A DNA stretch of 64,000 bases from assembly GCA_002189035.1 (NCBI GenBank), contig NEEC01000012.1:1860001-1924000 (forward strand). Reading direction: 5' to 3'. Below the pieces are notes generated by a model. It worked only from the letters and a program-made list of their open reading frames with translations, was not told the origin of the DNA and ran no database searches. A program made the position numbers and the translations under genes. Shown piece by piece: positions 37,334-61,232 of the stretch. The stretch is from Utricularia gibba (lineage: Eukaryota; Plantae; Magnoliophyta). Within the stretch, counting starts at the first letter, position 1, and each line of letters starts with the position of its first letter.

Positions 37334-37759
37334 AAATCTTTGCCGTGAGTTGATTGAGATGCCCGAAGCCCCGAGGTTCTCTCGGAATCCCTCCCCGCCA
37401 TGGCATATCCTGCTTCTTTTTGGTAAGGCGTGATGAATGATGACTTGGGGGACGTGTGCTGCCTGCCCTCTCCATTTTTGTGCAGCTGCATATTCATTTG
37501 TTCAAATTCATGGTGTTTTGTCTGAGTTCCTTTTCTTGTAATTACGAATCATATCAAAAGTATTTTTTTCTTCCATGGTTTACATTGCTATTGCCATCGT
37601 GAACTGCATATGCTAGATAAAGTCTTTTGGATTGTAAAAAGCAATGGGAATCTTACACTTGCTGCAACAGTGCGACAAATGAAAGAATGTGTTGGTGAGC
37701 TACATGGCTAAATGTGTGATCCAGATTAACAGGAAAGGGGATTTATTTGTCCCTCAGGC

Positions 37760-38883
37760 TCAGGAGAAGGGGGACGGCAAGGCTGTGCAGTTGAGGGCGG
37801 CGAGGGTGGGCTGGATGAGGCTCTGCTCGATGCGGACGGCGATCTCCTGTGTGAAGTGGATGCCATCCCAAAACATGTGGTGTGCGGGGTCCGAGCACAC
37901 GGGCACTCCTGCAGTCCCGCAGAACCTGTTGCTGCTGTAGTCGTACTCTCCTCCGATGCCGCAGCACGCCTTCAGGGCGGTGTCCGCGTGTCCCTCTGCA
38001 ACACACGCCATAACCAGTCAAAAATCGGAACCACGGGTGTATCTATGTATGCATGTGCGTACCTTGATTTAATCTGTCGAGGACCTGCAAGAAGCCCTCG
38101 TCGAAGGCTCCGTAGATGAGGGTGACGTTGGGGAACTCCTGCCCCAAACTGTTGATGCCTCGCCGGAGATAATTGTTCTTCAGGTTGATGAGTCTGTTGA
38201 CGCTGTTGAGGCATCCCAAACGGTCGTACGCCGCGGGATCATCGGAGGGCATGGCGGAGAGGATGTAGGGGAAGCAGCCGAGGGGAGCACTTGCGGGGAT
38301 GACGATGAGCCTGGCGCCCATGGTGATGAGCTCCTGCAAGGCAAGCGGGGTTGGTATCAGTATGCTCTGAAGAACATGGAGGAGAGCTGGACAGAAATGA
38401 ATTGGTTAGTTAGTTACCCTGGTGGCCTTGATTTGTTCTCTGGTGATGGGGCCGATGTAGGACTGCGCTTCCTGGAGGGTTCTCCCTTGCGTCAAGGCGT
38501 ATCCGATGTCATTTGCCTCGAGGTCCCCCAAGAGCACGAGCGAATTGGCCAGCCTGTTGGGGATGCAGTCGGCCGAGGATGAGCCGCACACCGACCGGAG
38601 GTGGGTTCTGAACCATTCGAGCTGGGTGGTGAGGGAAACTGCGTAGGGCGGGATCCGAATGCCCCGGCGAGAGAAGAACCCGTGGTCCATCACCGGACTC
38701 CTGGCGACCGAAAAGATGACGCCGTTGCTGGAATTGGACCTCTCCGACAGGTAAGGAACTATCTCCGGGAACCCGAAGTCAAAGGCGGCGAAGTCGAAAT
38801 CAACGAGGCCGTCGGACCATCGCCCGTTGGGCGTGCCGGGATAAGTCCGGCCGTAGGGGGCACGCGTGTCGGGCAATGATCTC
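37760..38883 (-). pseudogene. GDSL copy A: 5'-truncated acetylajmalan-esterase-like GDSL gene
   Basis: Nearly identical to copy C from gagatcattg (RSLPDTRAPYGRTYPG) through both introns to PSPFS* at 37760. The start codon, signal peptide and block I are replaced by copia LTR sequence at 38884. Confidence 0.9.
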
Positions 38884-39115
38884 TAAACAAGCAAATAAAG
38901 AATAGCTAGAGGAAGATGAGCGCAGTAAAATATTTCCGTAAAAAAAATCAGCTCTATGCATGAAAAAAAACAGCAGTCTACAAGGCTTATTTCAAGAAGA
39001 CTAAAAACCAGAACACACGCAAAGAACGTGGGTATATCACACGAAACCTCCTCTGCACGCTTTTCTGCACATCAGCAGGTTTAGCCCAGCTATTCCATAA
39101 TAACGTTCCTCTTTA
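38884..39115 (-). repeat. Putative 3' LTR of the copia element (~232 bp)
   Basis: Begins right after the PPT (TAAAG...) and ends where identity to the GDSL gene resumes (...GTTTA). There is no second LTR to confirm it. Confidence 0.55.
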
Positions 39116-42100
39116 CTCCCTCCTCAAGCTGGGGAGGACAAGGTCGTAGCCCAAGCTTGCCGATGATAGTAAAAAACGGTAGAGAATCTAACGCCTTAGT
39201 GAAGACATCAGCAAGTTGCTGTTTAGAAGGCGTGTAGATGGGTAAAAGAAATCCAAGCTTGAATTGATCACGAACGACGTGGCAATTGATTTCTATGTGC
39301 TTCGTCCGTTCGTGGAAAACAGGATTTGCGGTAATGTGAATTGCAGACTAGTTATCGTAGTGCAAGGGAATAGGGAGAACGAAAGTCTCACCAAGTGACT
39401 GCGTCAATTGAACCAGAAAGATAACTCAATAAGCGTTTCAGAGCGATCCAATGTTCAGACCCCGGACAATGAACATACTGAGATAGCTGCTGCACCACAA
39501 AGTAAGATCAGGCCTTGTAAAATTCAAGTAAAGCAGCCGACCAACTAACCCACGATATTTCTCAACACAGATGGGATTAGAAACAGTATTGGCCGAGAAC
39601 TTAAAACTCTGTGGCATGGGAGTGACCACACAAGGAGATAAATCAGCACTCAAAGGCTGAAGAATATCCGAAATATACCGTCGCTGAGATAAGAAAAGCC
39701 CATTAGCAATTCGTGTGAGCTCAATCCCTAAGAAAAAAGTAGCGTCGCCAAGATCCTTGATAGTGAATTTGGCATGCAGATCTGTTTTAAGCTGGGTAAT
39801 GGCATCCAAGGATGAGCCCCCGAGAAGGATGTCATCCACGTAAATCAGAACAACGAGAATAGATATCGCATCCCGCCGCACAAATAGGTAAGTGTCCGAG
39901 GGGCATTGAGAGAAACCCAAGCTTACCAGAAATCGACTAATTTCAAGGTTCCACTGGCGCGAGGCTTGCTTAAGCCCCTATAAGGATTTACGCAGCAGGC
40001 AGACATCTCCCTCCTTGCACCCATATCCTTCTGGAGGGTGCATGTAGATCTCTTCATCCAGGAATCCATGAAGGAAGGCGTTGTTAACATCAATTTGATG
40101 CAGAACCCATGAATGCTTCGCAGTAAGCGCCAACAACAGGCGAATGGAAGTAGCCTTAGCAACCGGTGCAAAGCTGTCATGGTAATCCACCCCTTCCACT
40201 TGTGTATAACCTTTGGCTACCAAGCGTGCCTTGAACCGATCAAGATGCCCATCAGATAATCGCTTGATTTTGTAAACCCATTTGCAACCGATGGCACGCT
40301 TACCCTTTGGCAAAGGAACAACCCTCCATGTTTCATTGTGCTCAAGAGCCTTAATCTCTTGAGACGTAGCATCACACCAGTGGGGGAATCGTGATGCCTC
40401 TCTATATGTGCGAGGTTCAGAAAGGAGACACGGCTCTTCAGGGTCTCCCGCATCAACCTAAAAAATGTGGTAGTCACGCAACCAGTCAGGTGGGATATGG
40501 CTCCTCTGACTTCGCCTAAGTCCCGGATCAGGAGAAGGCACCAAACACGGCGAGGAGTGGTGTGTCCCACCGGACAGAGGGGGAGCATGTGTATTAATGA
40601 TGGGGTGCTCTGAATGATTAGACCCGTCAGGGAGAGAAGCATCAAGCACATCCGCTAGGTGCATCCCTCATAGCATCACGCATACCAAATAGGGACTCAG
40701 GCGGCATAGCAGCAACTGGGACCTCTGGGTCATCATTATCAGGAAACACTAATGGCAATAAAACCTCATGAGAGTCCAGATCGTGAATAACACTCTTCAT
40801 CGGAAATACTCCTTCATAAAATTTGACGTCGCGGGAAATGAACATTGTATGCGTCTCAAGATCATAGAGCTTATACCCCTTATGATCCATGGGGTATCCG
40901 ATGAAAATGCATTTGCACGCCCGACAAGCTAGCTTATTGCCCCGAGAATCCAAATTTGCTGCAAAAGCCAAACAACCAAATATCCGCATATGAGCTAGTG
41001 CTGGGGGTTGGTGCATAAGAACTTCAAAAGGAGTCACCCAATCAAGCACGGAGGAAGGGATGCGATTTATAATGTAAGTTGCAGTGAGAAGAGCTTCACC
41101 CCAAAAATTCTTCGGTACCCCTGATTGAAACATTAATGCTCGCGTAACCTCCAAGAGGTGGCGATGCTTCCGTTCAACTCTGGCGTTCTGCTGTGACCGC
41201 TGAGTGCATGAATATTGATGGCGAATCCCCTTCTGTGCACACAAATTCTGCAAGGCAGAGCTCATAAACTCTCCTCCTTTATCCGTGCGAAGATGCTTAG
41301 TAGTTAGGCGAAAATGATTTTCTACATACGCAAGAAAGGCTTGTATGTAATTATCAATCCCAATCTTATCGCGCAATAAGAAAGTCCATGTAGTGCGGGT
41401 ATGATCGTCCACAATGGTGAGGAAGTATCGCATTCCATTAAAGGTGGTAAGTTCATATGGCCCCCATAAATCACAGCGGAGCAGGTGGAATGCATGTGGC
41501 GCACGGGAAGTGCTCAAAGGGAAGGGGACTTTCTGAAATCGAGCATATTCGCAGACATCACAAGGAACACTAGATAAGCCACATGGAACATGCATATACT
41601 GAGATTTAGAATTTGAAATGTGCCCAAGGTAGCAGTGCCATAGAAGACGTTTATCACCACTATGCAAGGCATCAGCAAAGAAACACATAGAAGGTAGTAC
41701 CACATTAACAAGACTATTGCGGATAACAGGTTTGTGGGCTACTGCAGCATATGCCGAAATCACACTTGATTGGAACGACCTCTTGTCCACCACATAGAGG
41801 CCATCTCGCACACGACCAACCCCTAGGACCTCATGGGTATCCGGGTCCTGCACCAAGCAATGGTGACTAGAAAACACAACATTGATTCCAACATCATCTG
41901 CAAGCCTCTTGACAGATAGCAAGTTGTACTTAAAACCAGGCAGATACAGGACATTCTGTAGTTTAATCCGCCTAGTTGATGGTATGCTACCCATATGACT
42001 CACCGGGACAAACTGTCCATTAGGTAGAGTCACTTGTAAGTGAGCCACCTGCTTCATGCCCTCAAAACTGATGGTGGAACAACTAATATGGGTAGTGGCT

Positions 42101-43255
42101 CCAGAATCAATAATCCACTCCCATGGATTACATACAAAGCATGCAGATGCAGTGTTCATGACTCCTAACACCTGTGGAATCACCATGAAATTTATGATGA
42201 AGCAAGTCCCATGGGGAATGTGGAGAAACGAACAGGAAAGGTTCCTGGGAAACTGAAGAAAGGAAAGATGAAGGGCAACAGGCCGTGCTTGGATGTGAAG
42301 GAAGAAGCGGGCCACTCTTCAAAGGCCCATAAGGTGAACCACACCTACTGAGGCCCCATCCCAACCTGCCTACCCAACAATCAGCAACGGTTGCCTACTC
42401 TGGAGTTGAGGAATAGGCAACGGTCACAAAATCCGAACTCTATAAAAGATACACTCCGCTGTAGATCAAAAAGTAGGGTAATAACCCAAACTCCACAGAC
42501 ATCATTCCACAAATCTGTTCTTCTTTTCTACAACTCTTCAACACCATGGGTGACGTACCTGAGAATTCCAGTTTGGACAGATTGATTGATGGAGAAGATG
42601 ACATGTGACCTTCAGGGTTTTCCCTTGAGGTAGAAGGTGGAATGCTACCCATCAACTTTGTCAATTCTCGCTGAATGACCTGTAAACGATCAGTGGAGTA
42701 TGAGATATCAGAAGCGTATGAGAGAGACTCATCCAAAGGGGTCTCAACACAATGCACAGCAGGTCGATAAGAATTATAAGACACAGGCTGACGAGGTGCC
42801 AACGGCGCTTGTTGATACTGATTCCAAGGGGGGCGAGACTGCTCACAATGAGGTGATTGTGATTTCACATCTTGGGAACCATATTTACCCCCTTTTTTGC
42901 GCCACCAAGGGGGAGGTTCTTTGACCGTGAAGCAATTGTCAGATAGATGACCCTGCTTATTACAAATGGTACAGAACCTGTTATCACGACGCTATCCTGG
43001 TCCGGGATGTGTCCCAGGGTTGGGCTCTCGAATGGACTTAATCATCATGGCTGAGTTGGTGTGGATATTCACCACCTCAGGTGTCCTTCGACACATCTGT
43101 TGCTCAACATTCAAGAGGGCCCCATATGCCTTGGACACTATCATGAATTCATCCATGGCTAGTATCTGATTACGAATCCCATCAAATTTCGGGTGGAGAC
43201 CCAGCAGAAATTGAGTGAGCTTAGTTGATCCAAAGAATCTATCGGCATTTACTGG
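38884..43255 (-). mobile_element. Ty1/copia LTR retrotransposon (Ale/RE1-like), degenerate, truncated within gag, 3' LTR only
   Basis: Gag remnant KLTQFLLGL..IRNQIL; protease WIIDSGATTHI; integrase CDLWGPY/YFLTIVDDHTRTTW/QQNARVERKHRHLLEV; RT AIGCKWVYKIK/RFKARLVAKGYTQVEG/QIDVNNAFLHG/LIYVDDILLGG; RNase H ADVFTKAL; PPT gaggagggag. The frames are interrupted. Confidence 0.95.
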
Positions 43256-44000
43256 TATATTGCATTTGTGCCTTGGGATGAATTTCTCATCATAATGCAA
43301 GCAAAGGTTTTTGGCCTTTGGTTCTTCGAATTCCTTCCGTGGTAGCTGTTTTAGGGTCATTGATATGAGATTCTCCTTTTTTTGTAGTTTGGTTTTCTAT
43401 TTGGGTAGTCTCATTGTCCTGATGGTTTACATTCAAGTGTTCTTTTTCTCTATTTATGTTGATTTTGCCTACTCCTTTGAAGGTTCCGTTCTTGCTGTGT
43501 AGTAATAGCACCAAGCTCGTGGCATCTATAGTGTTGCAAGGATTCTAGAGTGTAACTTGATTCTTAAGGTCATCGGGTAATCCATTCAAGTATATGCGCA
43601 TTTTGTTCATGGGATCCAAGCTTTGAACTGTGACTGCCATTTCCCAGAAGCAATGGTTGTAGTGTTCTAAGCTTCCTATTATAGATAGCTTTGCGAAATG
43701 CATCATATTGGATGTCCAATTCTAAGAACCAAACTGTAGATTTCAAAATCTTTTGAACTCATGACATTTCAAACCGGGAGATTATTGCTCTGTAACCATA
43801 TAAACCAGTTTTGTGCTAAACCCTCTTGATACATTAGATCACACGGTGGTTGTTCTCATCATCTGTGCTATGATGTTTGAATGCATGCTCACATCTGTAA
43901 AGCCATCCTAAGGGGTCGGATTCACCATTATATTTGGGCACTTATTGACGTAATTGGTTGATTCTGGGTTTCCAGTAGTAAAATCTTTCCGATTGTATAA
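43255..44000 (-). mobile_element. Degenerate Ty3/gypsy gag-like remnant inside the left arm (mirror at 59170-59898)
   Basis: Broken frames include EFEEPKAKNLCLHYDEKFIPRHKC, a decayed gypsy gag knuckle-like (LC..CDEKF...HKC) segment. A more diverged third copy lies at about 53495-54110. Confidence 0.55.
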
Positions 44001-44137
44001 AGCAATGGGAAAACTTACACTTGCTGTAAGAGTGTGACAAATCAAAGAATGTGTTGTTAGCTAGCTACATGGGCAAATCTGTGCCATGGAGAAGGGATCC
44101 AGAAGAAGAGGAAAGGGGATTTATTTGTCCCTCAGGC

Positions 44138-45462
44138 TCAGGAGAAGGGGGACGGCAAGGCTGTGCAGTTGAGGGCGGCGAGAGTGGGCTGGATGAGGCT
44201 CTGCTCGATGCGGACGGCGATCTCCTGTGTGAAGTGGATGCCGTCCCAAAACATGTGGTGTGCGGGTTCCGAGCACACGGGCACTCCTGCAGTCCCGCAG
44301 AACCTGTTGCTGCTGTAGTCGTACTCTCCTCCGATGCCGCAGCACGCCTTCAGGGCGGTGTCCGCGTGTCCTTCTGCAACACACGCCATAACCAGTCAAA
44401 AATGGGAACGGCGGGTGTATCTATGAATGCATGTACGTACCTTGATTCAATCTGTCGAGGACCTGCAAGAAGCCCTCGTCGAAGGCTCCGTAGATGAGTG
44501 TGACGTTGGGGAACTCCTGCCCCAAATTGTCGATGGCTCGCCGGAGATAATTGTTCTTCAGGTTGATGAGCCTGTTGACGCTGTTGAGGCATCCCAAACG
44601 ATCGTACGCCGCGGGATCATCGGAGGGCATGGCGGAGAGGATGTAGGGGAAGCAGCCGAGGGGAGCGCTTGCGGGGATGACGATGAGCCTGGCGCCCATG
44701 GTGATGAGCTCCTGCAAGGCAAGCAGGGTTTGGTATCAGTATGATTTCAGGAGACTTCAACATAAATTGAAGGAGTGATGAATTAGTTAGTTACCCTGGT
44801 TGCCTTGATTTGTTCTCTGGTGATGGGGCCGATGTAGGACTGTGCTTCCTGGAGGGTCCTCCCTTGCGTCAAGGCGTATCCGATGTCATTTGCCTCGAGG
44901 TCCCCCAAGAGCACGAGCGAATTGGCCAGCCTGTTGGGGATGCAGTCGGCCGAGGATGAGCCGCACACCGACCGGAGGTGGGTTCTGAACCATTCGAGCT
45001 GGGTGGTGAGGGAAACTGCGTAGGGCGGGATCCGAATGCCCCGGCGAGAGAAGAACCCGTGGTCCATCACCGGACTCCTGGCGACCGAAAAGATTACGCC
45101 GTTGCTGGAATTGGACTTCTCCGACAGGTAAGGAACGATCTCCGGGAACCCGAAGTCAAAGGCGGCGAAGTCGAAATCAACGAGGCCGTCGGACCATCGC
45201 CCGTTGGGGGTGCCGGGATAAGTCCGGCCGTAGGGGGCACGCGTGGCTGGCAATGATCTCCCCATGGCTGGACAAGGACGGAGTTGCCGACGTCGGTGGC
45301 GCCGTCGCCGAAGTGGTAAAGGTAGGGAAACGGGCACACGGGGTTTGAAGGCAAGTGATTACTACTTCTGCTGCTGCTGCTGTTACCCGTCGTCTGGGAG
45401 GAAGCGAGAGCACAGGCACTGGCGAGTGCGACGAGCAGCAAGAGCCGAGAGAGGGAGCCCAT
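44138..45462 (-). CDS. GDSL copy B: secreted AAE-like GDSL/SGNH-fold protein lacking the catalytic Ser; 1-bp frameshift at about 45258-45263 (G4 vs G5), possibly a consensus error
   Basis: Signal peptide MGSLSRLLLLVALASACALA, YHFGDGATDVGN, GRWSDG, LGDLEANDI, ACCGIGG, WDGIHFT. The ORF splits at QPWG-DHC, where mirror copy E reads QPWGRSL. Confidence 0.88.
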
Positions 45463-45536
45463 GACGATGATGATGATGCTGTGTATGGGAATGCCGAATG
45501 ATGATGATGGGTCTCTGGTCGCAGAGAGCGCGCCTC

Positions 45537-45731
45537 TTTATAGGCTGCCGGAGAATGGAATTGGAGATGTCAAAGGCCATTTCACAGTTACGTGTTGATG
45601 AATTCAACATACGGCGTCGTGTGCTCCTCACGCGTACGGCTTCCATTCAAAGACCACCTAACCCCTGCACGCCACGTGCACTCAGTCCATATTAAATTTC
45701 TAATATTCTTATTTTACTGTATCTGACGTCA
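45537..45731 (-). promoter_or_regulatory. Proximal promoter of GDSL B (mirror 57422-57616 for E): TATA box, G-box CACGTG, palindromic TGACGTCA
   Basis: TATAAA 45537-45542 (minus strand) about 75 bp upstream of the ATG, CACGTG 45673-45678, TGACGTCA 45724-45731. Motif matches only. Confidence 0.5.
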
Positions 45732-47039
45732 CTACAAAATTAGTAAAAGATGAATAATGAACATCACCATTTTTCTCATGCATATATCTAATTTTTTATT
45801 TATTCATTAAATCATTTCGTGTAATAATTAGGAAATAAAAGTGGATGATGCCATGGCCATGTCATCCCAAATGGCAACCCTAGTGGTTGACGAGAATTCC
45901 CCATCCAGTCATGGGCGGCTAAATGGGCAATTCGCCCTTCTGCCCAGTGCTCCAGTTCTCCCCTAGGCCCACGTACTGTATCTGATCATTTATTGGGTTA
46001 TTTTAAATAATAACTATTTTAATTTATTTTAAATATGATTTTTCAAATTTTTTTTAATATTAATTATCACAGGATATCGTGGGATATTTATCAGATTTAA
46101 CATTGTATGTATTTTAAAGTTATCGCGTGTTTATTAAGTATGCTGTTGTACCCTATAAGATATTATGGTATAATATCTTTACAGAGTGTTATTAGATATC
46201 GTTGAATGCGATTGAACGAAATCGAATATAGTAAATTTTAAAATAATTTAGCTTAGAAAAATTGTAAATAAATATAAAAAATTGAAGCACATATAAATAT
46301 TTATTTTAAAAAATATTTTCAAACCTTAAAAATCAATTATTTTTGAAATACAGTTTTTAAAAATACATTTATATGTTTTGTAAACAATTTTTAAAATATA
46401 TATTTAATATTTTTATTAAGTGATAAAATCTTTTTTATTATTTTCTTATAAACATTATCTAATAATGAATATAAATATAAAATACTACATGATTTATATA
46501 AAAATGAAGTAAATGTATTTTGGTTATTTTTATCAATATATGCATATTTTTATTAATTTAACTCATATTTATTAATGTAAGATAGTTATTATTCAAACAA
46601 ATATTAAAAGATGGTGAAATTTGAAAATTTTGATGTTGTAGTATGATTATTCTTCAAAATAATCCATTGTTTATTTGATTTTCTACTGTACCATCATTTA
46701 TAATCATAAATAAATGCCATGATATTTGGAAGACTATAGCATTGAAGACCATAGTATTCATGAGCTTTTATAATATTTATAAAAGTATCTATTTTTAATT
46801 AAAAAAATTAGAAATAGAAATGTGAGACGATGGTTCCGATACAAAATGCTCAAAAGCAGATGCACGTTGTTTAGAAGGGGGGAAAAGACAGCGGTGAGAT
46901 TTGTATTTATTAATGTTTGAATCACTCATCGTATAAAATTCATACGCGGGCTGAAGACAAAGAAAAACACGACGAGAGGAGTAGAAAGTCAGCGGTCCAA
47001 TGAAAACGGAAAAGTTGACATTTTCCGTTCCCGGCAGCC

Positions 47040-47046
47040 TATAAAT
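47040..47046 (+). promoter_or_regulatory. TATA box of GDSL C (mirror 56107-56113 for D)
   Basis: cTATAAATag about 75 bp upstream of the ATG, in a ggcagcctataaa context shared with B/E. Confidence 0.6.
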
Positions 47047-47118
47047 AGGCGCGCTGTCTGCGACCAGAAACCATCATCATCATTCGGCATTCCCTTACAC
47101 AGCATCATCATCATCCTC

Positions 47119-48440
47119 ATGGGCTCTCTCTCTCGGCTCTTGCTGCTCGTGGCACTCGCCAGTGCCTTTGCTCTCGCTTCCTCCCAGACGACGGGTAACA
47201 GCAGCAGTAGTAGTAATCAATTGCCTGCAAACCCCGTGTGCCCGTTTCCCTATCTTTACCACTTCGGCGACGGCGCCACCGACGTCGGCAACTCCGTCCT
47301 TGTCCAGCCATGGGGGAGATCATTGCCCGCCACGCGTGCCCCCTACGGCCGGACTTATCCCGGCACCCCCAACGGGCGATGGTCCGACGGCCTCGTTGAT
47401 TTTGACTTCGCCGCCTTTGACTTCGGGTTCCCGGAGATCGTTCCTTACCTGTCGGAGAGGTCCAATTCCAGCAACGGCGTCATCTTTTCGGTCGCCAGGA
47501 GTCCGGTGATGGACCACGGGTTCTTCTCTCGCCGGGGCATTCGGATCCCGCCCTACGCAGTTTCCCTCACCACCCAGCTCGAATGGTTCAGAACCCACCT
47601 CCGGTCGGTGTGCGGCTCATCCTCGGCCGACTGCATCCCCAACAGGCTGGCCAATTCGCTCGTGCTCTTGGGGGACCTCGAGGCAAATGACATCGGATAC
47701 GCCTTGACGCAAGGGAGAACCCTCCAGGAAGCGCAGTCCTACATCGGCCCCATCACCAGAGAACAAATCAAGGCCACCAGGGTAACTAACTAACCAATTC
47801 ATTTCTGTCCAGCTCTCCTCCATGTTCTTCAGAGCATACTGATACCAACCCCCGCTTGCCTTGCAGGAGCTCATCACCATGGGCGCCAGGCTCATCGTCA
47901 TCCCCGCAAGTGCTCCCCTCGGCTGCTCCCCCTACATCCTCTCCGCCATGCCCTCCGATGATCCCGCGGCGTACGACCGTTTGGGATGCCTCAACAGCGT
48001 CAACAGACTCATCAACCTGAAGAACAATTATCTCCGGCGAGGCATCAACAGTTTGGGGCAGGAGTTCCCCAACGTCACCCTCATCTACGGAGCCTTCGAC
48101 GAGGGCTTCTTGCAGGTCCTCGACAGATTGAATCAAGGTACGTACATGCATACATAGATACACCCGCCGTTCCCATTTTTGACTGGTTATGGCGTGTGTT
48201 ACAGAGGGACACGCGGACACCGCCCTGAAGGCGTGCTGCGGCATCGGAGGAGAGTACGACTACAGCAGCAACAGGTTCTGCGGGACTGCAGGAGTGCCCG
48301 TGTGCTCGGACCCCGCACACCACATGTTTTGGGATGGCATCCACTTCACACAGGAGATCGCCGTCCGCATCGAGCAGAGCCTCATCCAGCCCACCCTCGC
48401 CGCCCTCAACTGCACAGCCTTGCCGTCCCCCTTCTCCTGA
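47119..48440 (+). CDS. GDSL copy C: intact ~389-aa secreted AAE-like GDSL/SGNH-fold protein lacking the catalytic Ser; exons 47119-47781, 47867-48137, 48205-48440
   Basis: GT-AG introns splice in frame to give CPFPYLYHFGDGATDVGN...PYGRTYPGTPNGRWSDG...QLEWFRTHLRSVCG...GDLEANDIGY...ATR|ELITMGAR...|EGHADTALKACCGIGGEYDY...CGTAGVPVCSDPAHHMFWDGIHFTQE. This is colinear with Rauvolfia acetylajmalan esterase as I recall it. Confidence 0.95.
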
Positions 48441-48606
48441 GTCTGAGGGACAAACAAATCCCCTTTCCTGTTCTCCTGGATCCCTTCCCCATTTGCCCCT
48501 GTAGCTAGCTAACAACACATTCTTTGATTTGTTCAGCGTTGACAGTAACCACAAATGCATTATCAGTTTCTTCGAAACGTGTCGTGTGTTATGCACCCGA
48601 TTCACA

Positions 48607-51600
48607 GAGATAATTACTTATCACACCAACGGTTAGATAGAGAATTCCAAGATGTAGCCAACTTTGTACTTAGTGCTTCATTTTATTTACACATCATCAT
48701 TTTTTATTTAATTTTTAATTCAATTAATATTTTATATTTATATTTTACACGAAAATTAAAAAAAATAATATATTATATTTATTTCTTTTTATATTATATT
48801 ATAATCAATTTGATCATCACAATAATACATATGTAACATTGATATTTTCAGATTTTAACATTAAAATTCTAAAAAATTTTAAAATTAAAAAACGAAGCAA
48901 TAGTACACATGTGATACTGACATGTTCAGATTTTAACATTAAAATTGTAAAAAAGTTTGGTGTAATATTAAATTCATTTGTTTTTTTTCCAATTCAAAAT
49001 TCAAAAACGAAGTATATAATGAAATACGCATCTCATATCATCATTCTTTCTCCTTTTCTTCCTCTTACAATTTCAATGGCTTCCTCTTGAATTGAGATCC
49101 AATTGTAATGGGGAGGTAACTTGTTTTATGGAAACAATGGTGTGTGCTATGATTCAGCACCACGATTTTCTGCTTCGATTATTCGAGATACCTCAATATC
49201 CATGCTGCTGTCGTTGATTTATGAAGTTATGCAACTATCTTCAAGTGAGTATTCTATTACCATCATTGTGAATTATGTTGCTATGGATTCAACAATGGGT
49301 TTTCAGAGGTACTGACATCCTCTTGATCAAACGGATGTTAGTTTGTCTTTGATTTTTAATCAAAGTCGTATAGTTTCAAGTGTTGATATGTATATTAGTG
49401 CAACTCCAAGCTTCATGAATTTGATCATTCAACAACACACTGGTATGTAATTTTTTTTTCCAAATAACATTTATTATTATTAGTTTTATATTATATTTAG
49501 GATATGTTTTTTGAATTCATATGATTAATTTGTGCTAATGATATATTTTATGTTTTATTTCTAGTTAATGTTGGAGAAGCATCAACCAATCATAATAATC
49601 CATGCACTTTACCAACATATCACAATTCTTCATCACCAGAATCACCTTGTGATGAAAACATATTATGGGATTTGGATCATTTATGTGAGAAAGATGGTAC
49701 TGAGCAAGCTGAAAACGAAATGATGCAAGAAGTTATTCCATCTCCACTTTCTTCAAGTGATGATGATGATGAACAAATAGAAGTCAGGTTTTATGAAAGC
49801 GATGTGGCAATGGAAATTCCAACAGCATTTGAGTTTGAGAAGACTTTAAACTTCTATGATGGGACAAACGGTGATCCATGCAAGGGGGTTTTCTTCAAAG
49901 ATAAAACTTCAATGAAGGAAGCATTGAATTATTATTGTATCACGAAGCTGAAAATGCCTTTTCATGTTGAGAAGAGCAATAACAAGCAGTATGAGATAAA
50001 CTGTATCAACCGAAATGCAACACCTCCATGTGAATGGCGTGTTAGAGTATGGAATAGCAGTGTCACTCAGTTTTGGACTGTGACACAATATGAGGGGCCT
50101 CATACTTGCTTTTCTAACAGTTCCAAAACTATTAGAAATGATAGCATTACTAGCAAATTTGTGTGTCTTCATATCATGAACAAGGTTAAAGCAAATCCAT
50201 GGATGTGTGTTTCTGATGTGATTGATGATATTAATGAAGTTTATCATTTCAAGATATCATATAAGCTTGGATGGACTGCTATTAGGCGTGATATTATGCA
50301 TATGTATGGTACTTGGGAGGAATCGAAGACAAAGCTCCCTTCTTATTTGTTATCTATTAAGGAATCTAACCCAAATAATTCATTTTTATTATTTTACAAA
50401 TATTGATGTTTGTTTACTAACATATTTGTTTTTATCACAGATACTATATTTGAATATGAGAATCTTCGTTCCCATGATGGCAAGCAAATGCTACACCATA
50501 TATTTTGGGCTTTTGGATCATGCGTGCATGGTTTTAGGTATTGTCGTCCAGTTATTACTGTTGATGGAACACATCTATATGCAGGATATAGATATCACCT
50601 TCTAATAGGATGCACACTTGATTGTGACCGTACTATAATTCCACTTGCATTTGCTATTGTTGAGGAAGAATCTTATGAATTCTGCTATTGGTTTTTTAAC
50701 CTTTTAGTTAAGCATATCGTGAAAGGACATCGTATTCGTCTAGTAACTGACCGTGGTGCAGGATTATTATCTGCAATTAAGGATATACCTGCTTTCAATG
50801 AGCCTATGGGAGATTACAGATTTTGTATGCAACATCTACTTGCAAATTTCATATCCCATTTCAGGTCGAAACATTTGGTTGATTTATTTTGGGAAGTTGC
50901 CTTAGGTTCAAAAAAGAAAAGTTTCAGATAGCTATGGAGAAAATCAGAAATAAGAATGAGGCAGCATTTGAGTATCTCCATGAAATCGATCCAAAGCGAT
51001 GAACATTATCATATGATGATGGCATTAGGTAACTTGAAATGGTATAATTTTATTAATATTATTACTATGTTAACCTTATATTTCTTTTTTTGTAGATGTG
51101 GTGTGCATACCACAAGTATCTCTGAATTATTAAACAGTGTTTTACGTGGGGCACAAAGATTACTTCCAAAAGCTCTTGTTGATGCCACTTTCGAGAGATG
51201 TGTTAAGATTTTCACAAATAGTAAAGGGGTCAATTGCTTACTCCATATTCACTATCTGTTTATAGGAAATGTGATGACAAATCAACCAACTACAGGATCA
51301 AGAAATACAATGCAGAGAAAATGAGTGACACTGTGATGTCTCTGAGTAAAAATTCTAGAAAAAACAAATATTATTATATTATTTATTTGACAGATTTGAC
51401 ATGTACTTGTGGAGAGTGGCAGCAAAAAGTTATTCCATGTTCACATGCCATTCAGGTAAGAATTATCTTTTGATATATCATGTGATTTGTAATATCATAA
51501 CAATTGTTAACTTTATTCCTCTCTTAGGTGTACAAGGAATTCAATGAAGATACAAGTTATTATATTTCAAAATATTATCAAGTGAAGATCCTTGCGAAAA

Positions 51601-52142
51601 TATACAAAAGACAATTTAATCCACCAATTCCTGAGAGTGGATGAGGTGCATCTCCATTTGATCTTGTTCACAATCCAGCAATAAGATTGAATATCAGAGG
51701 TTGTGCTAGATCAACACAATTTTCAAGTAGTTTAACTCATATACATTCGAAGAGAAGATCAAGATTTAATTAATTTTAATTTTAGATATTTTCGAGAATG
51801 CGTTTTCGAGACTTTGGGATTTTAATTTGAATAATATTGCTTATGCATTTATTAAATATTTTATTGCATAATTTTTGCATATATTTAATTATTATGTTTT
51901 AATTTATTGATTAATATAAATATTGTAATATAACTATATTGTAATATATTATATTTAAATTTTTCAATATAAAATATGATTAAATATATATTTTTTTTTA
52001 GAAAAGTATATATTTATATGATTTTTTGTACAAAAATAAATAATAAATAATGATGTGGAAATGAAATGTACCATTATAAGACAAAGTTGGCTACATATTG
52101 AAATTCTTTCTCCAATTGTTGATGTGATAAGGAATTTGCCCC
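48607..52142 (+). mobile_element. Mutator-like (MULE/MuDR) element, degenerate, with diverged TIRs and 9-bp TSD
   Basis: Transposase pieces FRYCRPVITVDGTHLYAGY...PLAFAIVEEE...VTDRGAGL...RFCMQHLLANF and SWIM-like CTCGEWQQKVIPCSHA, with stops. TIRs about 100 bp at 48607-48710 and 52035-52142 share ttatcaca and atgtagccaactttgt. TSD cgattcaca (48598-48606) / cgattgaca (52143-52151). Confidence 0.9.
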
Positions 52143-53099
52143 CGATTGACATATGTTGGATACGGGATATGAGTGATAAATATTAATAAGTACATTAAAA
52201 AATGAAAATTTAAAATTGAAATTCAATATTCCACATCTCATTTAATATTTTTTTATTTTTTTATTTATATTAAAAATAATAAAAAAGATAATTACCTTTT
52301 ATATAAATAAAATATTTATTATATTATTTGTAATTTATCAACAAAATTATATTTCATTCGATATATATGTGTATATATATAGATGTAACAACTCAATCAA
52401 GGCAACCTAAGGAACTGTACTATGAATAACATTAGCAACACAAACATATTCTACAAAAACCAATAACTTCGAAAATACATGTGATTGTTTACTCCAGATA
52501 CAACGGACCTCAATTATAATGCTTCTCTAGGTAGCCTTAGGCACGAGTTAGCACTTGAGTCACAAGTCAAATTTGATGAGTCAGGATAATAAAGATAACC
52601 CGTCCAGTCACGAGTCAAAAAGTTATACATTTGACTCGACTCTTATCATGAGTTATTTGGAGTCGAATATTTAAAATACAAACACTGTATTTAATCTATT
52701 TAGTACTTGTCATAATTTGTGAAAAAAATAACATCACAATTTATACAGTACCATTTGTTTTCCACTCAGTGTTTTTCCATAATTTAAAAAAATCAGTAGC
52801 ACTATCTAGAATCACATATACACTAAACCGATGCTTGTCATAACTTGTGAGATATAACAATATTATACAACGCAATATTTGTGTTTCTTAATGCTTATCA
52901 TATATATATATATTAAAAAAATACAAGTTGACTTGGATAAAAAAATATATGATTCAGTACGAGTCAACTCAAGAGTTACTCGAATTAACTCGTACTAGGT
53001 AGTAGTGCCCATATGTAAAAAAGATGGATAATAAATTTTGTGGAGCCCAAGATTGGACACTTGTCTCCTAGAACTATTTTGTGTTTTGTGTGCCTCGTG

Positions 53100-54110
53100 A
53101 TCTGAAGGCATAGCTTGAAGAAAGTACAAAGTCTCTTCTGTGATCAACACCACGGCAGCATTGGCGCTTGGAGACATTTCTAAGAATTTAATGGGTCCTG
53201 TTACTCGTTCTTGCACCATAAATACATCACATTTGGTATAGAGCAATCTTTCTGTACCTGTGAGATGGAAGAATTGAAGGAAATGATAAAAGCTCTTCAC
53301 ACCCAAATGGAACCATGCATGACTGCTTTAGAGCAGCAATTGGAGTCTCATCGTTGGGAACCATCTGTGGAGAGCTCCAAAACTTTACTTTTTGTTGTTG
53401 TTTTTCTTGCAGAATTGCTTGTGAGAGTTCATCCTATTTTGCTATCACCAATCATGTGGGAAAACAACTCGAAATGGAGAAACATGATGCCCCTTACTAC
53501 TAGCAACCCAGAATCAACCAATTACGTGTATAAGTGCCCAAATATAATGCTGAATCCGACCCCTTAGGATGGTTAACAGATGCGAGCATGCATTCAAACA
53601 TCATAGCACACATGATGAGAACATGCACCGTATGTTCTCAAGTAGCAAGAGGGTTTAGCCCAAAACTGGTTTATATGGTTACAGAGGAATAATATCCCGG
53701 TTTGAAATGTAATGAGTTCAAAAGATTTTGAAATCTACACTTTGGTTGGTTCTTAGAATTGGGCATCAGTATGATCCATTTCGCAAATCCATTTAAGATA
53801 GGAAGCTTAGAAGACTACAACCATTGCTTCTGGGAAATGGCAGTCACGGTTCAAAACTATAGATGCCAAGACCTTGGCACTGTTACTACACAGCAAGAAC
53901 TGAACCTTCAAAAGAGTACGTAAAAATCAACATAAAAAGAGAAAAAGAACACTTGACTGTAAACTATCAGGGCAATCAGACTACCCAAATTGAAAACCAA
54001 ACCACGAAAAAAGGAGAATCAAATACCTACCATGGAAGGAATTCGAAGAACCAAAGGCCAAAAACCTTTGCTTGCATTATGATGAGAAATTCATCCTGAG
54101 GCACAAATGC
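53100..54110 (+). mobile_element. Degenerate Ty3/gypsy gag-region remnant in the spacer
   Basis: Visibly homologous but not identical to 59185-59895, and extends further 5' with a decayed MEELKEMIKALHTQME... frame. Confidence 0.5.
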
Positions 54111-54454
54111 ATGAACCTATTTTTATTTTAGAATTCATTCACAATGAATTCCAAGATGATGGGGTATTCGAGGTGCATATGTTTTTTTCGATGAAAAAGG
54201 CCTATTTCGATCAAGTAAACTTTTAGCACATGAATCAATTAATCAACCAGTTAACCGATGTAAACCAATTGATTCCCAGAACACTTCTGCTTCATCAAGA
54301 AAACAGCACATAAAAATCTTTCAGTCAACACATACTAATGCTTTCCATATTTATTTCAGAGAACTGAAACCATAAAAAGCCAGCATACTAATGCTTTCGT
54401 GGTTCATCGCAACAAATTGTTAACTTGACTTGGCGAAAAAATGGCAACCGCAGC

Positions 54455-54525
54455 TTAATTCTTGCCAGCAAGATCCTCTAAGGTAATATTCAAAGAATCA
54501 GCAGACACCTTCTTGACTGTCTCAC
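54455..54525 (-). pseudogene. Duplicated 3' tail of the DNL zinc-finger gene
   Basis: Encodes ETVKKVSADSLNITLEDLAGKN*, nearly identical to the end of the gene at 60262-60330. Its 3' flank (to about 54110) also matches 59900-60260. Confidence 0.85.
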
Positions 54526-54712
54526 CCATATCCCGTATCCAACATATGTGAATCGGGTGCATAACACACGACACGTTTCGAAGAAACTGATAATGCATTT
54601 GTGGTTACTGTCAACGCTGAACAAATCAAAGAATGTGTTGTTAGCTAGCTACAGGGGCAAATGGGGAAGGGATCCAGGAGAACAGGAAAGGGGATTTGTT
54701 TGTCCCTCAGAC

Positions 54713-56034
54713 TCAGGAGAAGGGGGACGGCAAGGCTGTGCAGTTGAGGGCGGCGAGGGTGGGCTGGATGAGGCTCTGCTCGATGCGGACGGCGATCTCC
54801 TGTGTGAAGTGGATGCCATCCCAAAACATGTGGTGTGCGGGGTCCGAGCACACGGGCACTCCTGCAGTCCCGCAGAACCTGTTGCTGCTGTAGTCGTACT
54901 CTCCTCCGATGCCGCAGCACGCCTTCAGGGCGGTGTCCGCGTGTCCCTCTGTAACACACGCCATAACCAGTCAAAAATGGGAACGGCGGGTGTATCTATG
55001 TATGCATGTACGTACCTTGATTCAATCTGTCGAGGACCTGCAAGAAGCCCTCGTCGAAGGCTCCGTAGATGAGGGTGACGTTGGGGAACTCCTGCCCCAA
55101 ACTGTTGATGCCTCGCCGGAGATAATTGTTCTTCAGGTTGATGAGTCTGTTGACGCTGTTGAGGCATCCCAAACGGTCGTACGCCGCGGGATCATCGGAG
55201 GGCATGGCGGAGAGGATGTAGGGGGAGCAGCCGAGGGGAGCACTTGCGGGGATGACGATGAGCCTGGCGCCCATGGTGATGAGCTCCTGCAAGGCAAGCG
55301 GGGGTTGGTATCAGTATGCTCTGAAGAACATGGAGGAGAGCTGGACAGAAATGAATTGGTTAGTTAGTTACCCTGGTGGCCTTGATTTGTTCTCTGGTGA
55401 TGGGGCCGATGTAGGACTGCGCTTCCTGGAGGGTTCTCCCTTGCGTCAAGGCGTATCCGATGTCATTTGCCTCGAGGTCCCCCAAGAGCACGAGCGAATT
55501 GGCCAGCCTGTTGGGGATGCAGTCGGCCGAGGATGAGCCGCACACCGACCGGAGGTGGGTTCTGAACCATTCGAGCTGGGTGGTGAGGGAAACTGCGTAG
55601 GGCGGGATCCGAATGCCCCGGCGAGAGAAGAACCCGTGGTCCATCACCGGACTCCTGGCGACCGAAAAGATGACGCCGTTGCTGGAATTGGACCTCTCCG
55701 ACAGGTAAGGAACGATCTCCGGGAACCCGAAGTCAAAGGCGGCGAAGTCAAAATCAACGAGGCCGTCGGACCATCGCCCGTTGGGGGTGCCGGGATAAGT
55801 CCGGCCGTAGGGGGCACGCGTGGCGGGCAATGATCTCCCCCATGGCTGGACAAGGACGGAGTTGCCGACGTCGGTGGCGCCGTCGCCGAAGTGGTAAAGA
55901 TAGGGAAACGGGCACACGGGGTTTGCAGGCAATTGATTACTACTACTGCTGCTGTTACCCGTCGTCTGGGAGGAAGCGAGAGCAAAGGCACTGGCGAGTG
56001 CCACGAGCAGCAAGAGCCGAGAGAGAGAGCCCAT
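54713..56034 (-). CDS. GDSL copy D: intact mirror of copy C
   Basis: ORF-track translations are identical to copy C (224-aa and 98-aa pieces and the last-exon piece), including GDG. Confidence 0.95.
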
Positions 56035-57690
56035 GAGGATGATGATGATGCTGTGTAAGGGAATGCCGAATGATGATGATGGTTTCTGGTCGCAGACAGC
56101 GCGCCTATTTATAGGCTGCCGGGAACGGAAAATGTCAACTTTTCCGTTTTCATTGGACCGCTGACTTTCTACTCCTCTCGTCGTGTTTTTCTTTGTCTTC
56201 AGCCCGCGTATGAATTTTATACGATGAGTGATTCAAACATTAATAAATACAAATCTCACCGCTGTCTTTTCCCCCCTTCTAAACAACGTGCATCTGCTTT
56301 TGAGCATTTTGTATCGGAACCATCGTCTCACATTTCTATTTCTAATTTTTTTAATTAAAAATAGATACTTTTATAAATATTATAAAAGCTCATGAATACT
56401 ATGGTCTTCAATGCTATAGTCTTCCAAATATCATGGCATTTATTTATGATTATAAATGATGGTACAGTAGAAAATCAAATAAACAATGGATTATTTTGAA
56501 GAATAATCATACTACAACATCAAAATTTTCAAATTTCACCATCTTTTAATATTTGTTTGAATAATAACTATCTTACATTAATAAATATGAGTTAAATTAA
56601 TAAAAATATGCATATATTGATAAAAATAACCAAAATACATTTACTTCATTTTTATATAAATCATGTAGTATTTTATATTTATATTCATTATTAGATAATG
56701 TTTATAAGAAAATAATAAAAAAGATTTTATCACTTAATAAAAATATTAAATATATATTTTAAAAATTGTTTACAAAACATATAAATGTATTTTTAAAAAC
56801 TGTATTTCAAAAATAATTGATTTTTAAGGTTTGAAAATATTTTTTAAAATAAATATTTATATGTGCTTCAATTTTTTATATTTATTTACAATTTTTCTAA
56901 GCTAAATTATTTTAAAATTTACTATATTCGATTTCGTTCAATCGCATTCAACGATATCTAATAACACTCTGTAAAGATATTATACCATAATATCTTATAG
57001 GGTACAACAGCATACTTAATAAACACGCGATAACTTTAAAATACATACAATGTTAAATCTGATAAATATCCCACGATATCCTGTGATAATTAATATTAAA
57101 AAAAATTTGAAAAATCATATTTAAAATAAATTAAAATAGTTATTATTTAAAATAACCCAATAAATGATCAGATACAGTACGTGGGCCTAGGGGAGAACTG
57201 GAGCACTGGGCAGAAGGGCGAATTGCCCATTTAGCCGCCCATGACTGGATGGGGAATTCTCGTCAACCACTAGGGTTGCCATTTGGGATGACATGGCCAT
57301 GGCATCATCCACTTTTATTTCCTAATTATTACACGAAATGATTTAATGAATAAATAAAAAATTAGATATATGCATGAGAAAAATGGTGATGTTCATTATT
57401 CATCTTTTACTAATTTTGTAGTGACGTCAGATACAGTAAAATAAGAATATTAGAAATTTAATATGGACTGAGTGCACGTGGCGTGCAGGGGTTAGGTGGT
57501 CTTTGAATGGAAGCCGTACGCGTGAGGAGCACACGACGCCGTATGTTGAATTCATCAACACGTAACTGTGAAATGGCCTTTGACATCTCCAATTCCATTC
57601 TCCGGCAGCCTATAAAGAGGCGCGCTCTCTGCGACCAGAGACCCATCATCATCATTCGGCATTCCCATACACAGCATCATCATCATCGTC

Positions 57691-59088
57691 ATGGGCTCCC
57701 TCTCTCGGCTCTTGCTGCTCGTCGCACTCGCCAGTGCCTGTGCTCTCGCTTCCTCCCAGACGACGGGTAACAGCAGCAGCAGCAGAAGTAGTAATCACTT
57801 GCCTTCAAACCCCGTGTGCCCGTTTCCCTACCTTTACCACTTCGGCGACGGCGCCACCGACGTCGGCAACTCCGTCCTTGTCCAGCCATGGGGGAGATCA
57901 TTGCCAGCCACGCGTGCCCCCTACGGCCGGACTTATCCCGGCACCCCCAACGGGCGATGGTCCGACGGCCTCGTTGATTTCGACTTCGCCGCCTTTGACT
58001 TCGGGTTCCCGGAGATCGTTCCTTACCTGTCGGAGAAGTCCAATTCCAGCAACGGCGTAATCTTTTCGGTCGCCAGGAGTCCGGTGATGGACCACGGGTT
58101 CTTCTCTCGCCGGGGCATTCGGATCCCGCCCTACGCAGTTTCCCTCACCACCCAGCTCGAATGGTTCAGAACCCACCTCCGGTCGGTGTGCGGCTCATCC
58201 TCGGCCGACTGCATCCCCAACAGGCTGGCCAATTCGCTCGTGCTCTTGGGGGACCTCGAGGCAAATGACATCGGATACGCCTTGACGCAAGGGAGGACCC
58301 TCCAGGAAGCACAGTCCTACATCGGCCCCATCACCAGAGAACAAATCAAGGCAACCAGGGTAACTAACTAATTCATCACTCCTTCAATTTATGTTGAAGT
58401 CTCCTGAAATCATACTGATACCAAACCCTGCTTGCCTTGCAGGAGCTCATCACCATGGGCGCCAGGCTCATCGTCATCCCCGCAAGCGCTCCCCTCGGCT
58501 GCTTCCCCTACATCCTCTCCGCCATGCCCTCCGATGATCCCGCGGCGTACGATCGTTTGGGATGCCTCAACAGCGTCAACAGGCTCATCAACCTGAAGAA
58601 CAATTATCTCCGGCGAGCCATCGACAATTTGGGGCAGGAGTTCCCCAACGTCACACTCATCTACGGAGCCTTCGACGAGGGCTTCTTGCAGGTCCTCGAC
58701 AGATTGAATCAAGGTACGTACATGCATTCATAGATACACCCGCCGTTCCCATTTTTGACTGGTTATGGCGTGTGTTGCAGAAGGACACGCGGACACCGCC
58801 CTGAAGGCGTGCTGCGGCATCGGAGGAGAGTACGACTACAGCAGCAACAGGTTCTGCGGGACTGCAGGAGTGCCCGTGTGCTCGGAACCCGCACACCACA
58901 TGTTTTGGGACGGCATCCACTTCACACAGGAGATCGCCGTCCGCATCGAGCAGAGCCTCATCCAGCCCACTCTCGCCGCCCTCAACTGCACAGCCTTGCC
59001 GTCCCCTTCTCCTGAGCCTGAGGGACAAATAAATCCCCTTTCCTCTTCTTCTGGATCCCTTCTCCATGGCACAGATTTGCCCATGTAG
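57691..59088 (+). CDS. GDSL copy E: mirror of copy B, exon 1 intact; C4 vs C5 at about 59003-59006 removes the normal stop and extends the C-terminus (possibly a consensus error)
   Basis: 226-aa first-exon ORF with YHFGDGATDVGN. The last exon ends PSPSPEPEGQINPLSSSSGSLLHGTDLPM* instead of PSPFS*. Confidence 0.9.
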
Positions 59089-60261
59089 CTAGCTAACAAC
59101 ACATTCTTTGATTTGTCACACTCTTACAGCAAGTGTAAGTTTTCCCATTGCTTTATACAATCGGAAAGATTTTACTACTGGAAACCCAGAATCAACCAAT
59201 TACGTCAATAAGTGCCCAAATATAATGGTGAATCCGACCCCTTAGGATGGCTTTACAGATGTGAGCATGCATTCAAACATCATAGCACAGATGATGAGAA
59301 CAACCACCGTGTGATCTAATGTATCAAGAGGGTTTAGCACAAAACTGGTTTATATGGTTACAGAGCAATAATCTCCCGGTTTGAAATGTCATGAGTTCAA
59401 AAGATTTTGAAATCTACAGTTTGGTTCTTAGAATTGGACATCCAATATGATGCATTTCGCAAAGCTATCTATAATAGGAAGCTTAGAACACTACAACCAT
59501 TGCTTCTGGGAAATGGCAGTCACAGTTCAAAGCTTGGATCCCATGAACAAAATGCGCATATACTTGAATGGATTACCCGATGACCTTAAGAATCAAGTTA
59601 CACTCTAGAATCCTTGCAACACTATAGATGCCACGAGCTTGGTGCTATTACTACACAGCAAGAACGGAACCTTCAAAGGAGTAGGCAAAATCAACATAAA
59701 TAGAGAAAAAGAACACTTGAATGTAAACCATCAGGACAATGAGACTACCCAAATAGAAAACCAAACTACAAAAAAAGGAGAATCTCATATCAATGACCCT
59801 AAAACAGCTACCACGGAAGGAATTCGAAGAACCAAAGGCCAAAAACCTTTGCTTGCATTATGATGAGAAATTCATCCCAAGGCACAAATGCAAGATACTA
59901 TTTTTTTCAGAATTCATTGACAATGAATTCCAAGGCGATAGGGAGGCCGAGGGGCATTTGTTTTTCAATGAAAAAGGCCTATTTCGATCAAGTAAACCGT
60001 TAACACATAAATCAATTAATCAAACCAGTTAACCGATGTAAACCAATCGATTCCAAGAACACTTCTGCTTCAACAAGAAAACAGCACATACAAATCTTAC
60101 AGTCAACACATACTAATGCTTTCCATATTTATTTCAGAGAACTGAAACCAAGAAAAAAAAAAGCCAGCATTTGACTGCAGGATCAAGAAAGCCTTATCTC
60201 ATGCTCGTCGTTCATTGCAAGAAACTGTTAACGTGGCTCGGCCAAAAATGGCCACCACAGC

Positions 60262-61232
60262 TTAATTCTTGCCAGCAAGATCCTCTAAAGTAATATTCAA
60301 AGAATCAGCAGACCCCTTCTTAACTGTCTCCCCACGAGAAGCCAAAAACTCTTCAACACTTCCTGGATCCCCAAACCATCCCAGTCGATCAGCAATCAAA
60401 TGCAGATTGTTGCACCCATCACATCTTGCGATGACAATGCCTTTGTCGTACGATTCCCTGCAAGCTGTCTTAACTGATCGTGTATCACAAACTTTGCAGG
60501 TGAACACCATTACGAAATCATGCCTTTTAGACACCTTCAGCTTTGAATTTACTGCAGTCTCTATGCTTCCTGGAGTTGAAGCAGAACTCCCAGTTCCCGA
60601 TGCTGAGCTGCAGGTTCCGGCATCTGGTTCTCGGTGGGCAAGAGCAGTGTTGGATTCAGCAGGAGAGTGACATCTCCTTGTATACTGTCTATTGGTGTAA
60701 GGAAAATACGGTGACGAAGTACCAATCCATGAGATATCTGCAGCAGAAGATTTTCTCTAAAGTTTAAGGGAAAGTAATTGAAAGCGTTACTTGCATTTCA
60801 AATAAGTCTTAACCCTGCTAATTCCCGATACTCTAACATAAACCAGTGAACTTAGAGTGGACCTAAACTGTAACACTAACTGCCACAGCTCGAATGCACG
60901 CAATGATATAAAATAAGCCAAAATGAGCATATAAAATTCGATTCCATGAATCATGCTGATTTTCACTAAGCTTCATACATTTATCTCAGCTATAAATATT
61001 CAGAACCTTAAATTAACCCTAATGCAGATCAAATTGCATCCCCCAGTCCGTTCACTAAATCAAAATACAAACTTAACCAAACCCCAACTTCCGAAAAGGC
61101 AAACAAACCCATATATAAATTGCCATACAGACGTGTGACTTGTGAGAAAAGGATGCGACGTGGGTCACCTCTAGAAAGCCGAATTGGAGGAGATTTTGAA
61201 GCCAGGAGAGAGAGAACCCGACGAGCCGCCAT
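60262..61232 (-). CDS. DNL-type zinc finger protein (Zim17/Tim15/Hep1-like mitochondrial Hsp70 escort), 2 exons
   Basis: Presequence-like MAARRVLSLLASKSPPIRLSR splices in frame to ...RHDFVMVFTCKVCDTRSVKTACRESYDKGIVIARCDGCNNLHLIADRLGWFG...; zf-DNL CxxC..CxxC motif present. Confidence 0.93.

Follow-up and report, generated by a model that had tools for sequence, protein, structure and literature searches.

A nested gene palindrome in Utricularia gibba whose arms were probably made identical by gene conversion within limits set by a transposon

How do two inverted copies of the same genes come to match letter for letter when one of them has plainly had a history of its own? We examined this question at a locus of Utricularia gibba (assembly GCA_002189035.1, contig NEEC01000012.1, positions 1,860,001 to 1,924,000 of the forward strand), a stretch of 64,000 nucleotides that we call the window and whose own numbering is used throughout. 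The window contains a 16.6-kb palindrome with two genes of the GDSL family in each arm, and one of the arms has been entered by a Mutator-like element (MULE). We consider it probable, if well short of certain, that the palindrome arose as an older inverted duplication, that its arms were later made identical by arm-to-arm gene conversion, and that the transposon bounded the stretch over which this took place.

The left arm of this outer palindrome lies at 43255-48606 and the right arm at 54547-59898, each 5,352 bp long. Both arms were delimited by an inverted-repeat scan and exact global alignment, and the left arm was also recovered by self-BLAST. Paired arm coordinates add up to 103153, and the spacer between the arms is 5,940 bp long. 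A first-pass annotation, made from the letters of the window, had already described equal arms with this landmark sum, and both the scan and the alignment agree with it; self-comparison (self-BLAST) confirmed the arms and brought out a nested structure as well. The annotation's count of two GDSL genes per arm also holds. In the left arm, gene a is the outer copy (44138-45462, minus strand) and gene b the inner copy (47119-48440, plus strand); in the right arm, gene b' is the inner copy (54713-56034, minus strand) and gene a' the outer copy (57691-59088, plus strand).

Exact global alignment of the arms revealed two 1-bp homopolymer indels, one with G5 in the left arm against G4 in the right (near 44147/59006) and the other with C4 in the left arm against C5 in the right (near 45260/57894). 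These two opposite indels had been reported as the only differences in the stretches of the arms then compared; both are present, but a substitution at 43259/59894 had been missed. It is the sole arm-arm substitution and lies 5 bp in from the outer edge, while the arm core of 5,347 bp carries 0 substitutions. Homology breaks off sharply at all four edges. With one substitution, two homopolymer indels and a 5,940-bp spacer, the structure shows the long inverted arms, at least 99.9% identical around a non-duplicated spacer, that are expected of a conversion-maintained palindrome.

The inner edge of the left arm is where the two arms part company. Directly adjoining it, at 48606/48607, is the Mu-type left terminus (GAGATAATTAC) of a 3.5-kb MULE (48607-52142, plus strand). 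The element encodes DBD_Tnp_Mut, MULE and SWIM domains and has terminal inverted repeats (TIRs) of about 140 bp that are about 80% alike (115/143 aligned), the right one ending at 52142. Its TIRs, MURA-type transposase domains and 9-bp target-site duplication (TSD) identify it as a MULE. The left TSD copy, CGATTCACA, is the stretch with which the left arm ends (48598-48606), and the right copy, CGATTGACA, follows the element at 52143-52151 and matches the left copy at 8/9 positions. Immediately beyond is a cut-off remnant of the left arm, 25 bp long (52152-52176), which mirrors 54546-54522 at 24/25 positions; this right-hand partner (54522-54546) sits directly inside the present inner edge of the right arm. 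The right arm itself presents an uninterrupted "empty site" in which the 9-mer is present once.

Because mirror homology resumes past the TSD and the right arm shows the empty site, the palindrome predates the MULE insertion. On this sequence evidence, the MULE is an ordinary insertion into the left arm of an existing palindrome. Since the remnant mirrors 54546-54522, the original arms were at least 5,377 bp long and the original spacer was 52177-54521 (2,345 bp).

The bases cut off by the MULE have diverged where the arm core has not. The 34 bp beyond the element, comprising TSD and remnant, carry 2 mismatches compared with 0/5,347 in the core (Fisher p = 3.9e-5), and with the TSD excluded the comparison is 1/25 against 0/5,347 (p = 0.005). 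At 5.9%, divergence over the 34 bp comes near to that at synonymous sites between the inner duplicates a and b (dS 0.064). The later MULE insertion and the diverged cut-off remnant suggest that the present identity of the arms is secondary, and the contrast between core and cut-off bases would reflect the age of the duplication together with conversion. The first-pass annotation had left the choice between a very recent duplication and an actively homogenised palindrome open; the MULE and the 2/34 versus 0/5,347 contrast favor the homogenised palindrome.

A sequence of events consistent with these observations would begin with duplication, in inverted orientation, of the head-to-head a/b pair and about 0.8 kb of 3' flank, so that a 2.3-kb spacer separated arms that were each 5,377 bp or longer. 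The MULE would later have landed in the left arm, 25 bp short of its inner end, making the 9-bp TSD. After this insertion, a break in one arm would have been repaired from the other, once or more, by non-crossover gene conversion or by long-tract break-induced replication or synthesis-dependent strand annealing (BIR/SDSA). Such repair could have proceeded through many short tracts or a single long-tract event, in either case leaving the 5,347-bp core letter-identical. The 3.5-kb MULE would have served as a block of non-homology at which conversion tracts ended, setting the inner limit of homogenisation, and the 34 bp past the MULE and the outermost 5 bp would have remained unreached, and so kept or accumulated differences. 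In inverted repeats, crossover resolution of the same intermediates is expected to flip the segment between them, and an arm-arm crossover at this locus would invert the spacer.

The outer edges of the palindrome show which of its junctions is original. The spacer contains an older direct copy of 59172-60334, which we call X' (53494-54528, plus strand; 84-89% identical) and which gives us an outgroup at the outer edge of the arm. The interval 59172-60334 covers the outer right arm and the right flank, reaching a zf-DNL exon that lies 364 bp past the right arm. X' aligned unbroken over 59898/59899, indicating that the outer junction of the right arm is ancestral and in its original context, and at the edge mismatch 43259/59894 the state in X' is that of the right arm. 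The left outer junction (43254/43255) is novel: here the arm is joined to the gag region of a truncated copia-type element, and a single open reading frame (ORF) crosses the join although its two halves are unrelated. As a side observation, X' and 59172-60334 form direct repeats of about 1.1 kb with retroelement-like ORFs, and could stem from an old segmental duplication or belong to one repeat family. The description of flanks and spacer as unique does not stand, given a fifth GDSL copy in the left flank and both X' and the 25-bp mirror remnant in the spacer.

Several points weigh against an older, homogenised structure. Just 3 mismatches carry the age signal, and two of them (43259 and 52172) lie exactly 5 bp from a homology end, and mismatches near junctions are also expected from error-prone synthesis during replicative duplication of the type driven by microhomology-mediated break-induced replication (MMBIR). 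The TSD mismatch is a single base. The transposase frame of the MULE contains in-frame stops, and these give no insertion date. Finally, the AT-rich inner spacer within each arm (28% GC) shows no GC enrichment, so that long-continued, whole-arm GC-biased conversion is not evident.

These points bear on a very recent inverted duplication without any homogenisation, which we think unlikely. Under this scenario, template-switch or fold-back repair copied 54522-59898 beside the truncated copia element within roughly the last 10-40 thousand years, the upper bound of about 40 thousand years being inferred from 0/5,347 differences and an assumed rate of 7e-9 changes per site per year. Close to each new junction, error-prone synthesis introduced a single mismatch, and the MULE inserted afterwards near the inner end. 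Recency would account for the absence of core substitutions even in highly mutable AT-rich tracts, as well as for the lack of GC enrichment in the inner AT-rich spacer. The junctions also suit it, both of those of the left arm being novel and the right outer one ancestral, as do the two edge mismatches, each 5 bp from a homology end and followed by 4 matching bases. However, a recent origin requires that, in no more than a few tens of thousands of years, a MULE hit a specific 5.4-kb target and the TSD acquired a substitution, and it does not predict the 2/34 versus 0/5,347 contrast (p = 3.9e-5). Nor are the arms uniformly identical, as the left arm has a private MULE and mismatches are concentrated within 5 bp of the outer edge and among the 34 cut-off bp. 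The sequence from 52177 onward is also not the missing part of the copia element, which means that the left arm did not simply insert into a single sequence already in place. We had considered such an insertion into copia and rejected it on this ground: 52177-53493 is not the missing copia 5' part, and consists of AT-rich non-coding sequence and a different retroelement-like ORF.

The two homopolymer indels raise the separate question of how far the assembly can be trusted. Polarised by b and by a/a', each is a derived loss of 1 bp from a G5/C5 run, and each arm has one such loss. In the left arm it disrupts exon 1 of gene a; in the right arm it puts the final two codons of gene a' out of frame. 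Because there are two indels with zero substitutions in 5.3 kb, consensus error is favored over mutation, and both are probably consensus errors of a long-read assembly. If so, the arms match completely, and none of the four full-length genes is disrupted. Since the arms carry different homopolymer errors, they must have been consensus-called separately.

It is very unlikely, in our view, that the palindrome itself is an artefact of assembly, with one arm a misjoined copy, or with diverged arms homogenised during consensus calling or polishing by mis-assigned long reads. The 1-bp deletions in G/C homopolymers do suggest an error-prone long-read assembly. A fold-back chimera, however, would have no 5.9-kb spacer, and the left arm bears traces of an independent past (MULE, TSD, diverged 25-bp remnant and copia junction) that mark it as a separate locus. 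The arms were called separately, yet they agree at every core substitution site, and random mixing of reads would leave discordant sites if there were more than a few true differences. Moreover, an arm of 5.35 kb is shorter than typical long reads.

That aberrant MULE transposition, alternative or between sister chromatids, produced the inverted duplication is barely credible: the MULE terminus does meet the edge of identity exactly, at 48606/48607, but one 9-bp TSD on both sides of the element and flanks that are contiguous in the right arm bespeak an ordinary insertion, and the outer palindrome edges have no TSD. We also considered the whole structure as a mobile element with 5-kb TIRs and rejected this, as the outer edges lack a TSD and the right flank was joined to its arm from the start.

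Each arm of the palindrome is itself a smaller palindrome. In the left arm, 44037-45560 (minus) and 47023-48532 (plus) are 94.8% identical and face each other head to head (self-BLAST), separated by a 1.46-kb inner spacer (45561-47022; mirror copy 56131-57592) that forms the shared 5' region of the head-to-head genes. This inner spacer is 28% GC as a whole, and its core is very AT-rich, at 12-19% GC. At the centers of the inner palindromes (46100-46700 and 56400-57000) the 12-19% GC sequence is of low complexity, yet it is identical between the arms.

Within this arrangement, gene b is intact and encodes 389 amino acids in 3 exons (47119-47781, 47867-48137 and 48205-48440 by splice model), and b' is identical to it. 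Gene a as assembled carries an exon 1 frameshift at the C4 run near 45260, where its ORFs are split between VQPWG and RSLPATR and where b, b' and a' read through. Exon 1 of a' is intact. Its deletion in the G run falls two codons before the stop and lengthens the frame by 24 codons, so that the C-terminal region reads ALPSPSPEPEGQ... where a and b read ALPSPFS and then stop. A fifth GDSL copy, which we call copy 0, lies in the left flank (37614-38883, minus strand) and is 5'-truncated in exon 1. Its identity to b is 97.5%, while its 3' flank is that of a. We considered copy 0 as a conversion chimera with a b-like body and an a-like 3' flank and set this aside, as a simple order of duplications explains it equally well. 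The first-pass annotation had stated that the palindrome doubles GDSL dosage. The direction is right, with four full-length copies in place of two, but the statement is incomplete, a fifth, truncated copy being present.

Comparison of a' and b yielded dN 0.010 and dS 0.064, and the resulting dN/dS of 0.16 indicates that purifying selection acts on the GDSL genes. Judged by this constraint, the amplified copies are probably functional. The longest identical tract between a and b is 236 bp (permutation p = 1e-4), and differences cluster in the intron and untranslated regions. We do not take this patchy identity as proof of conversion between a and b, for which coding constraint (dN/dS 0.16) suffices as an explanation.

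We next consider what kind of GDSL genes these are. A direct Pfam match on exon 2 is weak (21.5 bits, under the 23.6 cut-off). The nearest atlas clusters, however, are 95-98% Lipase_GDSL, and homologues down to E = 1e-82 carry PF00657, placing the genes in the GDSL/SGNH esterase-lipase family as "acetylajmalan esterase-like". Homologues are all from Lamiales (Rehmannia, Striga, Castilleja, Phtheirospermum and Paulownia), the nearest being in Orobanchaceae. The best matches in the protein search with the window GDSL were 64-69% identical, with none higher. Look-ups for contigs encoding the ORF across 43254/43255, or the GDSL exon 1 ORF, returned no record. Block I reads FGDGATDVGN in b (47119-47300), and likewise in a, a' and b', with Gly in place of the nucleophilic Ser of GDSxxDxG. 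Among the retrieved Lamiales homologues (P0001-P0049; Rehmannia, Striga, Castilleja, Paulownia, Buddleja and others), the motif could be located in 37, and 33 of these have FGDG, as FGDGxTDxG or FGDGxSDxG, indicating that the block I Gly is a trait of the subfamily and not a lesion at this locus.

The window genes also stand apart in composition and structure. They are 61% GC with GC at third codon positions (GC3) of 77-80%, against GC3 of 29-30% in Castilleja and Rehmannia relatives (L001:6917-11675 and L002:10001-13181). They have 3 exons, whereas the homologous coding sequence of the relatives lies in about 5 separate blocks, and a long branch of 0.71 changes per site leads to the window pair in the tree. 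A single-exon RING gene elsewhere in the window (15036-15680) also has a high GC3, 67%, and the genome may have a class of GC-rich genes. We therefore rejected GC-biased conversion as independent proof of homogenisation, since the RING gene (GC3 67%) and the inner spacer (28% GC) show that the signal is not specific to the palindrome. In Castilleja foliolosa (GCA_046119335.1, L001:6917-11675), two GDSL genes likewise stand head to head, 1.65 kb apart, with proteins 87% identical. GDSL paralogues group by species in the tree, in the window and Castilleja alike, and when the window was compared with the GDSL loci of Castilleja and Rehmannia, matches were confined to the GDSL genes, with no flanking synteny. 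Concerted evolution of an old head-to-head pair and independent duplication are both possible readings of this pattern.

It is conceivable that the locus reflects a wider habit, in which small autosomal gene-bearing palindromes, often of GDSL pairs, are continuously copy-corrected throughout the genome, erasing kilobase divergence, and in which GC-biased conversion also drove GDSL divergence. We regard this as quite unlikely. It would tie in the GC3 of about 80% versus about 30%, the 0.71 branch and the loss of introns. If true, it would provide a plant autosomal counterpart of the ampliconic palindromes of sex chromosomes, reshaping a secreted-enzyme family.

The left flank is a patchwork. 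A copia-type retrotransposon fragment occupies 38884-43254 (minus strand), its outer limits being set by its two junctions and its Pfam support (RVT_2, rve, Pol_BBD and gag_pre-integrs) being confined to 39441-42315. It adjoins the truncated copy 0 on one side and the left arm on the other, and self-BLAST of the window found no LTR-like direct repeats for it. Neither join within 37614-43254, copy 0 to copia or copia to arm, looks like a transposon insertion, and this patchwork suggests repeated break repair. Further upstream, a multi-exon SNF2-family helicase gene (19409-23620, plus strand), presumably ERCC6/CSB-like as judged by eye, had been tried as an in-window control for homopolymer errors; its apparent frameshift turned out to be an intron, the frame change near 22975 being an intron acceptor.

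If the arms were indeed homogenised after an older duplication, the locus would be a compact, self-dating example, from the nuclear genome of a plant, of copy correction between arms, in which the MULE insertion provides the time mark, the cut-off bases show the divergence to be expected and the arms show none. Such loci would be useful for studying rates of non-allelic conversion in plants, tract limits, blocking by heterology and spacer flipping. For annotation, the locus would be entered as four probably functional GDSL genes and one fragment, the two apparent frameshifts most likely being assembly errors.

Several known systems invite comparison. The plastid inverted repeat, which the first-pass annotation had invoked, is similar in that identical inverted copies are kept so by copy correction and the middle segment can flip. 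The likeness is apt in this loose sense and otherwise an analogy only, as the DNA here is nuclear (GDSL genes, MULE and copia) and its size, context and replication biology are unrelated. Inverted duplications arising from fold-back priming or template switching (PMC10622511; for a model of human inverted copy-number variants, PMC10766186) resemble this locus in having a spacer, novel junctions on one side and ancestral ones on the other, and mismatches near the junctions. Their arms, though, are uniformly identical at formation, whereas here there is a later MULE and a diverged remnant. Inverted gene duplicates undergoing interlocus conversion provide a third parallel, genes a and b standing head to head 1.66 kb apart much as the Castilleja foliolosa pair does at 1.65 kb; here the uneven identity of a and b is explained well enough by coding constraint.

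A further comparison is with the palindromes of sex chromosomes, in human and other primate X and Y and in the willow W. These likewise have long, near-identical inverted arms, a unique spacer and multi-copy arm genes, and nested or adjacent palindromes among them have arm sequence in common. The Salix purpurea W palindromes W.P1 and W.P2 have arms of about 20 kb and a spacer of about 3 kb, and the willow arms were judged from retrotransposon insertions to be millions of years old, yet are highly identical (PMC7023750). In willow the arms thus appear older than their identity, dated by retrotransposons, and the arms at this locus may be so too, judging by the MULE. The differences lie in scale and setting. 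The arms here measure 5.35 kb, whereas those of willow reach 20 kb and those of human as much as megabases; nothing here indicates a sex-limited, non-recombining region, and there is no whole-arm GC enrichment, GC-biased conversion having been described in X palindromes (PMC8981503). The earlier analogy with Y-chromosome palindromes is a fair one as to mechanism, and the structure is of a known kind, akin to the conversion-maintained palindromes of the mammalian X and Y and the willow W.

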